NCBI GenBank assembly: GCA_965202585.1
Contig: OZ241826.1
Span: 29,760,001 to 29,824,000, forward strand
DNA: 64,000 nucleotides
Reading direction: 5' to 3'
Origin: Thalia democratica
Lineage: Eukaryota
Shown: piece after piece, positions 9,648 to 42,180 of the stretch
How the letters are laid out: each line of letters begins with the position of its first letter
Numbering within the stretch: position 1 is the stretch's first letter
The notes under the pieces: model-generated
What the model was told of the DNA's origin: nothing
The model's database searches: none
What the model saw: only the letters and a program-made list of their open reading frames with translations
Position numbers and translations under genes: made by a program

Positions 9648-9690
9648 TTACGCATAAAACGTTTCGCTTATATAGCTCATCAGTGCTTAA
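9648..9690 (-). ncRNA. Minimal type I hammerhead-like motif of the kind found in Penelope-like elements
   Basis: Minus strand: ttaagca-CTGATGA-gct(atata)agc-GAAA-cgttt-TA-tgcgtaa. Core intact, 3-bp stem II, stem I pairs 6 of 7, stem III irregular. Confidence 0.6.
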
Positions 9691-20662: not shown

Positions 20663-20829
20663 TTGAGAAAGTAAGATTTTAAAAATACTGGTACATATGT
20701 TTTATAAGACTAGACGCTTTAATCATCAGCCAGTTAAATTAAAAGATTATAAATTTAAGTGGCTGATGATTAAGGTGTCTAGTCTTATGAAACATATGTA
20801 CCAGTATTTCTAAAATCTTACTTTTTCAA
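20663..20829. repeat. Inverted repeat, 70-bp arms with 27-nt spacer (hairpin/MITE-like)
   Basis: Arms 20663-20732 and 20760-20829 differ at 5 positions, all transitions. Confidence 0.9.
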
Positions 20830-27845: not shown

Positions 27846-28047
27846 TATTTATTTATTTAATTATATAAAAAACTATAATTCAAACAGCTGTTTCACACAT
27901 TGAAATGTAAAATTTCATGTGATCTTCAGTGAGTTGTAGTTTATTATAATAGACTACAACTCATTGAAGATCACATGAAATTTTACATTTCAATGTGTGA
28001 AACAGCTGTTTGAATTATAGTTTTTTATATAATTAAATAAATAAATA
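27846..28047. repeat. 202-bp near-perfect palindrome with no spacer
   Basis: Centre between 27946 and 27947. 101-bp arms with only two mismatches (cagtg/caatg and gttta/gtcta). Confidence 0.93.
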
Positions 28048-35331: not shown

Positions 35332-36170
35332 ATGAACTATAAAAATACTAAAGAACTTGTTGAAATTAAACTCACTACTAGAAATATAAGAAATACATTA
35401 AACTCTCTAGAAAAGACCATCAAATTGGTTTTCTATGACCACTTTGATTTTTAAGTTCACTAGCCTACTATAAATTTCACAATGCTGAGGACACTGATGC
35501 TTTGGAGGGAAAGTTTGAAAAATATATGAAAAAGTATAAAAATGTTTGCATGAAGTTTTCAAAGTTTAAAACTTTCAAAAAGTTTTCTTTAACGCTATCC
35601 CAAAATGATGTAAGTGAAAACATAGAGTTTGTTTTTAATCATGAAGAAAACGGAGAATTTATAGACAGAAGTAAAATAAACGAAGTCGTCGAAACCATCA
35701 CCAAATTTGGTAGAAATGTTCAAGTTAAATTTTCTTTCACTACTGAACCACACAAAGATTTTGAAAAACTCAAGAATGATGTGGATGACCTAAATGAAAA
35801 ACTAAATAAGGATAATGTAGACTCTAGTGAAATAAAACAATTGTTAAACAAACTGATCGAGTCTTGTCAAAACTATCAAATTATAGAACATTGTGATGAT
35901 TTAGCATTCTGTGGTAACATTCTAAACAACAAGCAAATAAAATATTCAAAAAAGTATTTGTACAAATGCGTATTGAAACAACAAACAGTTTTTGTTTATG
36001 AAGAAGCGTCAAATGATAATAAGGATTGTGCTGTTTGCTTGGAATATTTTAAACATGGAACCAAAGCTATAAAGCTGAAGTGTGGACATGCGTTTTGCAT
36101 TCAATGCATTGAAAAATGGCTGTCAAATTCTATTACGTGCCCCTGTTGTAGGCAAAGTCCTGAATTCTAA
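35332..36170 (+). CDS. Intronless C-terminal RING-HC (C3HC4) protein; one-base frameshift in a T-run near 35450 (pseudogene or assembly error)
   Basis: CAVCLEYFKHGTKAIKLKCGHAFCIQCIEKWLSNSITCPCCR in track ORF 35502..36170. ATG 35332 (MNYKNTKELVEIK...YDHFDF) joins LSSLAYYKFHNAEDTDALEGKF if one T is added at 35448-35452. Confidence 0.8.
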
Positions 36171-38216: not shown

Positions 38217-40075
38217 ATAAATACATGTAAGTCCAGTTTAGGAATAATCAGTAAAAAAATACTGAATAACATTCTGCCTGTGATAAGATCTAAAACAGGA
38301 CTGCTACAGTGGAAAAATTCACTTGAAGTTCTTGAATGGTTTAATAATATCAAAAATAAGAAACTATACGCTTTCATGAAATTTGATGTCGTGGATTTTT
38401 ATCCTAGCATTTCTAAAGAACTCTTAACAAAGTCTATTCAACTTGAAAGAAAATATATTGATATTAGTAATGATCAAGTTGAAATTATTTTTCACTCATG
38501 TAAAACTATTCTATTTTTCAATAATGAATGCTGTATAAAAAAGAACTCTGCCCATGATCTTTTTGATATCCCAATGGGAAGCTTTCATGGAGCAGAGGTT
38601 TGTGAACAGGTTTGATTATTTATCCTAAATGAGATTATTAATGACAAAAAGATCGAAAAATCCAATTGTGGCCTTTATCGAGATGACGGTTTACTTATAG
38701 TGAAAAAACGATCACATAGATTTATTGAACAACTGAGAAAATCACTAACGAAAGTATTTCAGCAACATAACTTAAAAGTAACAATCGAACTCAGCACACA
38801 TAGGGTGGAATTTTTGGACATAACTATGGACCTAGAGAAAGACGAGTACCTTCCATTTAGAAAAGAAAATGCTAAGAATATTTATATGAACTTTAATTCA
38901 AATCATCTATACCCAATAAAAAAAGAAATCTACTAATGATACAAAAAAGTTATCATCACTATCCAAAACTAAAGACATATTGACAAGATAAAAGAGTAGT
39001 ATGAAAAAACCTTAGAAAATAGTGGCTTTAAAACAACACTATCATATGTTCACAGTAATTCTATTGGAAAAAGTAGAAGAAAATTAAGGAAAACGAAAGT
39101 TTTTTACTTCAATCCTCCTTTTAGTAATTCTATAAAGACGAATATTGGGAAAGAATTTCTAAAATTAGTATCCAGACATTTCCCTAAATCAGGCTTTTAT
39201 GATTCTATATTTATAAGAAATACAATTAAGATTTCATATTCTTGCATGCCCAATTTGGAAAAAGAATTGTCCAACCACAACCAGAAATTACTTCAAAACT
39301 CAAATGATACAACTGAAGAAAACCGCAAATTATGCAATTGTAGATTAAAAAATAATTGTCCAGTTAAAGGTGAATGTCTTACCAAAGGAGTAATATATAA
39401 AGCAACAGTCATGTATAACAAAAAAGAACATATTTACATTGGTTCAACAGGGAGACAATTTAAAAATAGATTTTACGAACATATACAATCCTTTAATAAT
39501 GTAAAGAAGAAAGAAAGCACAAGACTAAGTAGATTTATACACAAAATAAAAAATTGCAACCCTGTTTGGAGAAAAATGATTAAATGGGAAATTATTCATC
39601 GCAGCAACCAAAGTAAGCCCAGTAAAATTTGTTCCCTATGTAATTTGGAAAGACTCGAAAAATGCATTTGCAGATAAAAACAAACTTTTAAACTTGAGAT
39701 CAGAACTGGTGGGAAAATGTAGACATTTTACAAAATTTGATTTTAAGTCTTAATATGCTAAATTTAAGTTTAATCTACCTTTGTTTTCATTATATAGTTT
39801 TGTTTTGTCGTTTGATTTTTGTTATAATTGTATTTACGTTAATTTTAATTTATATTGCTGATTATTACTAAAATTCAATTAGTTAACCAATCACCTAATC
39901 AACTAATTACTTATTTAAAACTTTATAAAATTTTTGTCCGTTGCAACTTATTAGTTTATTTGCTTTTACTTGTGATCATCGCACTAGCGTGAAACAATTG
40001 TTAAGTGATATACTCTTTAACAATTTAACTTTGTCATTATTGTATAAAGGCTCCTTAATTGTGAAGCTCTCTAAA
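38217..40075 (+). mobile_element. Penelope-like retroelement, 5'-truncated and decayed: RT + CxC linker + C-terminal GIY-YIG endonuclease, 3' UTR/pLTR with hammerhead
   Basis: RT motifs KFDVVDFYPSI, PMGSFHGAEVCE, LYRDDGL, VEFLDITMDL. Linker YFNPPFS...IGKEFL...CNCRLKNNCPVKGEC. Endonuclease VIYKAT...YIGSTGRQFKNRFYEH. C-terminal CSLCNLE...LNLRSELVGKCRH (stop 39751-39753). Several stops/frameshifts. Begins after an (AAT/AAAGT)-rich microsatellite. 3' boundary approximate. Confidence 0.92.
39966..40008 (+). ncRNA. Minimal type I hammerhead variant with G3/C8 core (GTGATCA instead of CTGATGA)
   Basis: ttactt-GTGATCA-t cgc(acta)gcg t-GAAA-caattg-TT-aagtga. Stem I ttactt/aagtga, palindromic stem III ACAATTGT. 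It sits about 210 nt after the PLE ORF, where PLE hammerheads are expected. Confidence 0.75.
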
Positions 40076-40204
40076 AAAATTCATTTTTAAAACAACTTCA
40101 ATATAAACTTATATTAATTTGAAAAGATAACTTTATTTAAAACCTTTACTATGTACTTTCTTCAGCCTTATTTTTCTTTTATGTAAAAATATTCAATATT
40201 TTTA

Positions 40205-41957
40205 TGTCACGGGAACAGCATCAAAAAGTTCACACAAAGCAGAAATAATGTAACTGACTCAAATAGTTTGAATTCTTCTCTAGGGTTTTTCCCTTTAATT
40301 TTCCTAAACATTTGCTCTGGAAAACGAATTTATTGCCTTGAATTTTCTGTTTGGTGGAAGTTTTGATTCTCGGGCGAATATTCTTGATTGAAAGAAATAT
40401 AATTGCCATTAGTTTGATTTTAATTTCTAAAATATTCAGGATTTTTTTTTACTTTATTTTGGAGAATGTCGATCTGTCGTTTAAGCTGCTCAATAGTTAA
40501 GTTATTGCCGTAAATGTGATTTGATTTTCTGTAATTTGTTTGATCACAGTTTAAGTAAGAATTTAAATCTTGTTGAAGACAATATGGTTGTGAAAAATTG
40601 TCCAACGGTGTATTAATTGGGCTCATATTTGTAGTAAGGAATGTTTCTGTTTCAGATGTTACTGGGTAGCTGGATATTAGCGATGTTCTTATGTTTAGGG
40701 AATCTTGAAAGTGCGTAGGATTGTTGGCAGCCGTTGTTTTGGTCATCATATATTTACCGGCTGAGGGCGAGTCTGTCAAGTTTATTTGTGAATTAAAATC
40801 ATTAACTGAACTTACCACACTTCTTGCAGAGGTATTGATTGGTTGACTATTCTGTAAAGAGAGTGCTTTTAAAATTTCATCAAATTTATTTTCTACTACT
40901 TTAGTTAGCTCATTTATTCTTTTAGTGTTGTCTTCAATGGTTGGTGTGAATAGGCTGGAGAGGACGCCATTGATGTACTCCGAACCACTGCGGTCTCTAG
41001 CTTTGTGGGAAACCGCCTCTGTAACAGATTCGGCAGTTTCGACAGCAGCCAGATTAGCAGTAGCTTCGAAGCCATCTTTATCTTTAGTTGCTACCTCGGT
41101 CTGTGACCGAATGCAAGAGTGTGTAAAAGCTAATACTCTATTTATTTTACTTATAATTTAAGTTTAAATACAGACTAACAAGTATATATATGCTTTATTA
41201 TACAATACAATCAAAGTTTATTACTTGAGAAGGCTTCTTGCAGTTCACAATTTTAGTTGAGCTGTAACAAATGGTTGCTCGTACAGTTTACTGGTTCAGA
41301 AAGTAGGGACTTATACTTCCTCGTTAACACTGGATGTAGAGCGCGCGAGATAAAAAGATACAATATTTAAATAACGAAAACGAAAGATAAGAGTAATAAG
41401 TTGATGCCACCGAATGCGTGGGCTTATGGGTCGAGTTCAATGTTCAAAATTATCCAAACTGGAAGTTGTTGCTGCTTGTCTGCTGCAGTATGCGTAGGCT
41501 TATGAGTATGGCACGTTAACAACTTAAATCAAGTTGTACGCCCCGTCGACGTTGCTAAAGTAGGTATACAAAATGTATATAAAAAGATATAAAAACTACG
41601 AAGTTATGAAGTTAAGTACAAAGTAAATGTTTCAGACAAACAAACAAATACTTGAATAAGAATGTTTCACTAGAAATCATCTAGATTTTCCAAGATGGCG
41701 ACTTACACTCAGAGCGCCAAGAGAAGGTTTTCCGGGAGTTCAGCTATTTTTCCAAGATGGCGGCTTACGCTTCGGATTGAAAACTGGCGTAGTGGTGCTT
41801 CTTGTTAACGTCGAAATCCAAATGATCTGCTTTCTCGTTTGCTCTGCTGTTTATATACGTCTTTCTTACATAACAATCGCCTGGTCAAGACATGGTCGCA
41901 TGATGTAACATGCTGATTAAAGCATGAAACCCGGCGTGATCGGTAGTTAATTCTACA
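40205..41957 (-). mobile_element. gag: 5' fragment of a Gypsy-like LTR retrotransposon (LTR region, PBS-like site, gag start) related to the 54-59 kb element
   Basis: Frame open from ~41157 to 40420: RSQTEVATK...YINGVLSSLFTPT...IEQLKRQIDILQNK. Downstream KIKGKNPREEFKLFES matches RIEKLKNPRDVLGYFQE of the 54-kb gag. TGGCGTCCTC at 40969-40960. TATATAAA at 41857-41850 and TGTAG at 41957. LTR limits uncertain. Confidence 0.65.
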
Positions 41958-42180
41958 TAGCAAAAATGCGTCAACTAGCGGTTGTTGTTATTTTTTAAAG
42001 CAATGTTTTTAAAAACCAAAGTGTTTTTATCATTTAAAGATTTATTAAAAAGAAAAGGAATTAAATATGAAACTACTTATAAACTCAACTTTTTGACTAT
42101 CGAAGCGAAAATAATAAAATTTTCACGTCGATGTCCAACAGTAGTAGATGTATCAATGTTATCATGGTAGTAACTGCTAT

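Follow-up and report, generated by a model that had tools for sequence, protein, structure and literature searches.

The question raised by this locus is whether a hammerhead ribozyme can exchange the two partners of its C3-G8 pair, a key contact shown by the full-length hammerhead structure, while keeping the remainder of its core. The motif concerned lies on the forward strand, in a Penelope-like element (PLE) carried by a 64,000-nt stretch of Thalia democratica DNA (hereafter, the window, whose own numbering is used below). An original prediction, made without database searches, had read it as a minimal type I hammerhead with a G3-C8 pair. Our analyses make it probable that the motif is the hammerhead of a young and abundant PLE family of the Hydra clade, in which C3-G8 has been replaced by G3-C8, and that the dead copy in the window has kept it.

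Positions 39966-40008 read TTACTT, GTGATCA, T-CGC-ACTA-GCG-T, GAAA, CAATTG, TT, and AAGTGA, and the scaffold proposed for them, namely stem I, stem II, the GAAA box, a palindromic stem III, and a GUGAUCA core, is present as it had been described. As in a type I hammerhead, the junction is enclosed by three helices, of which II and III are closed and only I is open. Stem I of the window copy has six pairs, one of them G-U, and the family consensus for its 3' strand, AAGTAA, gives six Watson-Crick pairs. A perfect 8-nt palindrome, ACAAUUGU, permits helix III to form between two copies. The core letters U4, G5, A6, A9, G12, A13, and A14, the A15.1-U16.1 pair, and H17 (here U) are intact in both the window copy and the consensus, and the numbering of the motif agrees with the cut predicted earlier after U40002, which puts the predicted cleavage point at 40002/40003. 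Two canonical features are absent: (i) the C3 and G8 of the CUGANGA box, in place of which G3 and C8 keep Watson-Crick pairing, and (ii) the G10.1-C11.1 closing pair of stem II, in place of which there is U-U.

The exchanged core belongs to the family as a whole (hereafter, the window family). All 38 of the copies examined carry GTGATCA, and a genome-wide pattern in which the seven core letters were left free matched 243 copies, versus 0 in the control; among the first 100 of these 243 matches listed, 93 have GTGATCA, seven have single-base variants, and none has CTGATGA. GTGATCA is thus the consensus and not the peculiarity of one copy, and the consensus stem I is TTACTT/AAGTAA. The suggestion that the U10.1-U11.1 mismatch is damage to this particular copy does not hold, because U-U is fixed across the family and recurs in two relatives with canonical cores (L089 and L182, see below), while a sister family in the same genome has U-A.

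The host element is a PLE, as had been proposed. The genome (0.8 Gb, ∼26% G+C here) contains hundreds of its copies with a common 3' end. The window copy is ∼7-8% diverged from younger copies and carries stops; its reverse-transcriptase (RT) remnants match an open 716-aa open reading frame (ORF) of the younger copies, which also has YRDDG, and an intact counterpart of its endonuclease (EN) is present in the same ORF. This single ORF, in an element of <3 kb, combines RT motifs with a C-terminal GIY-YIG domain (GVIYKA...IYIGSTGRQFKYRFYEH). A Pfam search did not recognize the element's protein. Its translation has ADKTDN, CNCRSKINC, CTLCNLE, and GKCRH, corresponding to the hallmarks of the Hydra clade, which are DKT, a CxCX5C linker, CxxC and CxH motifs by the EN core, and a length of <3 kb (Craig et al. 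2021, PMC8557442). The unit length, read from a natural tandem (L004+L015), is 2575 bp. Within this unit, 174 nt separate N17 from the ATG of the 716-aa ORF, and 219 nt lead from the stop of that ORF to the next hammerhead core. In the window, the motif lies ∼100 nt ahead of the 3' end of the element, a boundary that is approximate (40103-40126, depending on the alignment).

Copies of the element are truncated to a variable extent at the 5' end and are frequently accompanied by a head-to-head inverted, 5'-truncated partner. The inverted partners stop at ∼40045-47, and the direct copies at ∼40105-26 (loci including L005, L007, L020, L021, and L029). These two classes of 3' end look like the "tail" signature reported for PLEs (PMC8557442, PMC11167929), and would fit the two internal reverse-transcription start sites and the tail of PMC11167929. 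In the few sequences examined, copies end in ...CAATATATA, and the relative L081 adjoins (TA)n. The insertion signatures of PLEs, namely 5' truncation, partial tandems or pseudo-long terminal repeats (pLTRs), an inverted partner, and a tail at one end, are all present, as are RT, GIY-YIG, and the placement of the motif in the 3' region (pLTR).

To place the motif among its relatives, we used the element's protein, a search with which returned ∼1,400 relatives, mostly 40-46% identical, in marine and other assemblies; the contigs of 12 of them were examined for hammerheads. Canonical C3-G8 type I minimal hammerheads occur in L079, L081, L082, L084, L086/L087, L088, L089, and L090, the last being from the bivalve Solemya velum. 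Where contig ends allow the distances to be read, the motif lies ∼290-510 nt past the stop in most, and 50-250 nt before the next ATG; the hammerhead of L089 starts 12 nt past the stop. Their plan comprises a stem I of 3-8 bp, a 7-nt core, a stem II segment of 12-22 nt (mostly 12-14, with 12 the commonest), GAAA, a self-complementary helix III of 6-8 nt, and then U-H. L089 joins a CUGAUGA core to a U-CGC...GCG-U stem II identical to that of the window family, U-U at 10.1-11.1 included. Likewise, L182, a 2.6-kb metagenome contig encoding a full-length protein of 40% identity, has a hammerhead ∼170 nt before the ORF that reads CCUGU CUGAUGA UCGCGUAAGCGU GAAA CUCGGAG UU ACAGG, in which the core and stem II are nearly those of the window family and 10.1-11.1 is again U-U. 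A natural core variant of the clade is found in L080 (2499-2543), which has CCGAUGA (U4C), otherwise perfect stems, and the palindrome ACGGCCGU.

The descriptors used found no hammerhead in L083, a second contig of the protein of L082, or in L085, and the contigs of the closest protein relatives, P0001 (62%) and P0004 (79%), namely L077 and L078, end short of the hammerhead region; the family of L077 is absent from this genome at high identity. A first pattern scan of metagenome contigs returned nothing, and a looser one returned 120 loci, nearly all of them chance matches in GC-rich prokaryotic DNA, with L182 the only genuine PLE hammerhead. L162 (GUGAGCA), considered as a G3-C8 hammerhead, was rejected as a chance match in a GC-rich, coding-like stretch.

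We then asked how the paired positions behave in an alignment of 14 hammerheads (A4, which includes L089 and excludes L182). Standard pairs fill 87.7% of the cells, versus 54% in shuffles and 31-52% with slid partners, and the covariation score is 0.85 versus 0.20. All 14 sequences have a standard pair at 3-8 (C-G in eight, G-C in four, and U-A in two), and 10.1-11.1 is G-C in five, A-U in two, U-A in two, and unpaired in five. The window motif aligns to the hammerheads of the relatives with few or no gaps, and with none against L079 and L081. The motif is a homolog of the canonical hammerheads in related PLEs. Given canonical homologs that are collinear with it, and a 3-8 pairing that is maintained throughout, with G3-C8 in two families, the double change at positions 3 and 8 is covariation, as the original prediction had argued, rather than decay or chance.

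The second of these families is the sister family, which reads TTGCTT / GTGA(C/U)CA / UCGC GUAA GCGA / GAAA / CA(A/U)UUG / UA / AAGCAA. A genome-wide pattern search found 69-124 copies of it within three mismatches, and 0 in the controls. It shares with the window family G3-C8 and the CGC/GCG stem II, and it differs in that U10.1-A11.1 is paired and the loop is of the GNRA type. Between the two families, stem I has undergone a compensatory G-C/A-U change (TTGCTT/AAGCAA versus TTACTT/AAGTAA). One sister copy occupies the homologous position: a match to EN-coding sequence, in the same orientation, ends 225 nt upstream of it. Intermediate subfamilies exist (loop UUUA/AUUA; C at N7), and the sister family is older than the window family. 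The presence of G3-C8 in diverged families, with the other core letters intact, argues that the swap was carried by active masters through family turnover. The genome-wide GTGAVCA...GAAAC...GTH pattern whose matches exposed the sister family gave 110 matches in all versus 101 in the control, so that outside this lineage G3-C8 is not detectably enriched.

Several observations on the motif itself, on its folding, and on the life cycle of PLEs weigh against a G3-C8 hammerhead. As for the motif, a relaxed descriptor that admits any standard 3-8 pair finds 0.77 matches per 64 kb on both strands in 300 dinucleotide shuffles of the window. With a covariance model trained on seven hammerheads from other lineages, exactly 39966-40008 is recovered, as the seventh-ranked match in the window (12.7 bits, E = 0.67), and Rfam reports no hammerhead in the window at the gathering threshold or in 39800-40200 at E ≤10. 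All three results would suit a chance resemblance in AT-rich repeat DNA. The silence of Rfam is uninformative, however, since Rfam (E ≤1) misses the canonical hammerheads of the relatives as well. A strict descriptor, which demands six pairs in stem I and a perfect palindrome in helix III, is expected only 0.017 times per 64 kb in shuffles, and its chance of falling in the ∼430 nt of sense strand that follow the last open frame of the window copy, the usual place for a PLE hammerhead, is ∼6e-5. Further, the motif is placed where related elements have canonical hammerheads, it aligns to them almost without gaps, and its pairing covaries; a chance origin is effectively refuted by these homologs, and we give it almost no weight. 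The motif by itself is weak, and the case rests on its position, its collinear homologs, and covariation.

As for the folding, the hammerhead fold of the monomer has a free energy of -1.3 kcal/mol versus a minimum free energy (MFE) of -7.5 (z -0.86); a non-hammerhead MFE in the monomer is expected for minimal hammerheads of the dimer type and is not decisive. In the dimer, the cofold MFE pairs the palindrome between molecules, and the double-hammerhead fold lies above the dimer MFE by 7.5 kcal/mol in the window family, by 1.6-1.9 in the sister family, and by 0-5.6 in the canonical relatives, which makes the active fold of the window family the least favorable of those compared, as far as prediction goes. 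The competing structure is a hairpin, UCA-U-CGC...GCG-UGA, that pairs C8 with G12 and needs both C8 and U11.1. The MFE structures of monomer and dimer both use it, with C8-G12 and A9-U11.1 among the pairs, and PLEs start reverse transcription from within the RNA, at sites close to its 3' end (PMC11167929). One might then suppose that what is conserved is an RNA signal, either a hairpin or a protein-binding site (UCAUCGC-ACUA-GCGUGA, whose 6-bp stem has a single bulge), which could serve RT recognition or RNA stability, and that its likeness to a hammerhead is ancestral only. We consider such a signal very improbable: the hairpin is impossible in the sister family, where U10.1-A11.1 is paired and A9 and G12 are unpaired, yet G3-C8 and the rest of the core are kept, and it leaves the conservation of U4, G5, A6, stem I, and the palindrome unexplained.

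As for activity and the life cycle, the single changes C3G and G8C each abolish cleavage, and combining them brings back part of it, also in a PLE hammerhead that depends on its protein to cleave (PMC11167929); G3-C8 cores made by engineering have no more than partial activity (PMC11167929, PMC3884650). Some PLE clades, namely Naiad and Chlamys, proliferate without hammerheads (PMC8557442), and cleavage is dispensable for PLE insertion in vitro (PMC11167929). In the present genome, every copy extends 43-120 nt beyond the cleavage site, which implies that the reverse-transcribed RNA was uncut there, as in other PLEs. Marine metatranscriptome contigs that hold the 3' region of the element bridge the cleavage site, although RNA ends are invisible in assembled contigs; one RNA contig ends exactly at the 3' end of the element, and others enter different flanks, with DNA carry-over possible.

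Partial activity of the engineered G3-C8 cores, uncut insertions, dispensable cleavage, and a strongly disfavored active fold could together describe an inactive relic, in which activity was lost through the two core transversions and the U-U mismatch, and which is carried along because transposition needs no self-cleavage. We think this unlikely. Only in ∼0.4% of cases (1/78 x 1/3) would two random changes among the ∼13 conserved core positions hit 3 and 8 together and leave a Watson-Crick pair between them; moreover, (i) two diverged families keep all the remaining core letters in their consensus, (ii) the change in stem I between these families is compensatory, and (iii) helix III remains palindromic.

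The G3-C8 hammerhead of this lineage is, rather, probably a working but slow and dimer-dependent ribozyme, with the version of the window family weakened. By analogy with other PLEs, two copies on tandem or pLTR-containing transcripts would pair through the palindrome to form a double hammerhead, in which the G3-C8 pair would stand in for C3-G8 in the active site; each site would be cleaved after U17, probably slowly, and possibly with the aid of the element's own protein. With U-U at 10.1-11.1 and an A/U-rich stem I, the version in the window family is probably less active than that of the sister family. A stronger proposal would be that G3-C8 is a fully functional, selected alternative core across a Hydra-clade PLE lineage in marine invertebrates, with the lineage's avoidance of C at position 17, where it could mispair with G3, as part of the adaptation; we offer it tentatively, and with more doubt than conviction.

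Comparison with known systems shows where this core departs from them. Like the minimal type I hammerheads of PLEs (Cervera and De la Peña 2014, PMC4209133), the motif resides in a PLE terminal repeat, has an open stem I of ∼6 bp, lacks loop-loop tertiary contacts, and has a very short palindromic helix III that implies dimer action. Its core is the same except at positions 3 and 8 (GUGAUCA, not CUGANGA), whereas at 10.1-11.1 U-U takes the place of the usual G-C, and stem II has 3 bp instead of the larger number (∼6 bp) in that set. Natural 3-8 covariants, the existence of which the original prediction had rightly noted, have been published as U3-A8 (Perreault et al. 2011, PMC3088659; Cercyon PLEs of Schistosoma mansoni, PMC4209133). 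In these, too, a natural lineage has swapped the 3-8 Watson-Crick pair for another, but G3-C8 puts purine and pyrimidine on opposite strands and requires two transversions. The engineered C3G/G8C hammerheads (Martick and Scott 2006, via PMC11167929; Poseidon PLE hammerhead, Anolis) have the same core letters; those are laboratory constructs, whereas the families described here are natural, number hundreds of copies, and have G3-C8 as their fixed state. The Hydra-clade PLEs of PMC8557442 share with the present element its size, single ORF, DKT, CxCX5C, CxxC, and CxH motifs, an aquatic invertebrate host, and a repeat-borne hammerhead. Canonical hammerheads were stated to be universal in that clade on the basis of CUGANGA descriptors (Craig et al. 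2021, PMC8557442), which a G3-C8 core would escape.

The same genome offers two further points of comparison. Its 328-bp non-LTR retrozymes likewise have a type I hammerhead with a palindromic helix III (ACCGGU), but they differ in their canonical CUGAUGA core, G10.1-C11.1, GUC site, and non-coding tandem units. A second abundant PLE family (L048-L076), with open frames of up to ∼900 aa and a Pfam GIY-YIG match of 32.7 bits, has a U3-A8 core; the hammerhead at L048:2192-2239 reads AGAA UUGAAAA U-GUUUGUU...AAUAAAC GAAA GAUC UA UUCU. Hence C-G (in the retrozymes), G-C, and U-A all occur as 3-8 pairs within one genome.

Lunse, Weinberg, and Breaker reportedly listed ∼150,000 PLE hammerhead candidates in 2017. 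In the literature we searched, which did not extend to those candidates, no natural G3-C8 pair was found, G3-C8 appearing only in engineered mutants (PMC11167929, PMC3884650) and U3-A8 being the only natural 3-8 covariant. A natural G3-C8 pair in PLE hammerheads is apparently undescribed, with an earlier sighting possible. Its retention in this lineage provides a natural test of how freely the 3-8 pair exchanges, for which natural comparators are at hand in the sister family, with its paired 10.1-11.1, and in the canonical relatives, with their near-identical stem II. Searches with descriptors fixed on CUGANGA under-count retroelement ribozymes, and the claim of universality in the Hydra clade is built on such searches; if the G3-C8 core is functional, these descriptors and Rfam miss it, and both the sequence space of hammerheads and the number of ribozyme-bearing retroelements are underestimated. 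The overall picture of PLE hammerheads is unchanged.

Coordinates of the hammerhead motif and of its host element in the window
Feature	Positions	Strand	Basis or remark
Hammerhead stem I, 5' strand TTACTT	39966-39971	+	pairs with 40003-40008
Core box GUGAUCA: G3 = 39972, U4, G5, A6, U7, C8 = 39977, A9	39972-39978	+	window sequence, family consensus
Stem II: U10.1, CGC, loop ACUA, GCG, U11.1; 3 bp and U-U mismatch	39979-39990	+	
Core box GAAA: G12, A13, A14, A15.1	39991-39994	+	invariant in alignment A4
Helix III CAAUUG (39995-40000), then U16.1 = 40001, U17 = 40002	39995-40002	+	
Hammerhead stem I, 3' strand AAGTGA (family consensus AAGTAA)	40003-40008	+	
Dead 5'-truncated copy of a ∼2.6-kb Hydra-clade PLE	38215-∼40105	+	shared 3' end of genomic copies
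Broken RT remnants, ORFs 38280-38615 and 38700-38936	38280-38936	+	translations carry FMKFDVVDFYPSI, FDIPMGSFHGAE
EN remnant, CxCX5C linker and GIY-YIG, premature stop	39246-39677	+	CNCRLKNNC ... VIYKATV ... IYIGSTGRQFKNRFYEH
3' terminal region beyond the ribozyme	40009-40105	+	two classes of copy end

Other hammerhead-like sequences were noted in the window and near one copy of the element. Within the window, the covariance model scores highest (25.3 bits, E = 3e-4) at 2094-2136 on the forward strand, a retrozyme-type hammerhead with a GUCC...GGAC stem II, an ACCGGU helix III, and the core CAGAUGA (U4 to A). A candidate minimal hammerhead with a canonical core lies on the reverse strand at 9649-9689 (CUGAUGA, stem II GCU-AUAUA-AGC, G10.1-C11.1, GAAAC-GU; 18.9 bits, E = 0.014). 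A hammerhead-like pair, CUGAUGA ... AAAAC AUAUGUA, occupies 20686-20735 on the reverse strand and 20757-20806 on the forward strand, ∼20 nt apart (18.7 and 17.8 bits), and resembles the short inverted insertions, arranged head to head, that typify PLE-mobilized elements; in its reverse-strand member, G12 is apparently A in the displayed alignment. A near-perfect foldback of ∼150 nt spans 27870-28020, with arms reading CUGAAGA-U-CACAU...AUGUG-U-GAAA-CAGCUG-UU and U/U flanking stem II; 27877-28016 within it was considered as a canonical-core twin of the window motif's architecture and was rejected, its stem I being mismatched. The flank of one copy of the element (L012:1185-1233, reverse strand) holds an unrelated hammerhead, UUUGC UUGAAAA GGU...ACC GAAA CCGG UC GCAAA, with a U3-A8 core, G10.1-C11.1, and a GUC site.

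Immediately downstream of the PLE copy, another dispersed repeat occupies 40253-42141; it has at least 40 copies, of 90-94% identity, and also occurs in a shorter form that begins at ∼40970. Upstream of it, the forward-strand ORF at 35502-36170 encodes a C-terminal RING-H2 finger (Pfam zf-RING_2, E = 4e-12) and is probably an exon of a host gene.

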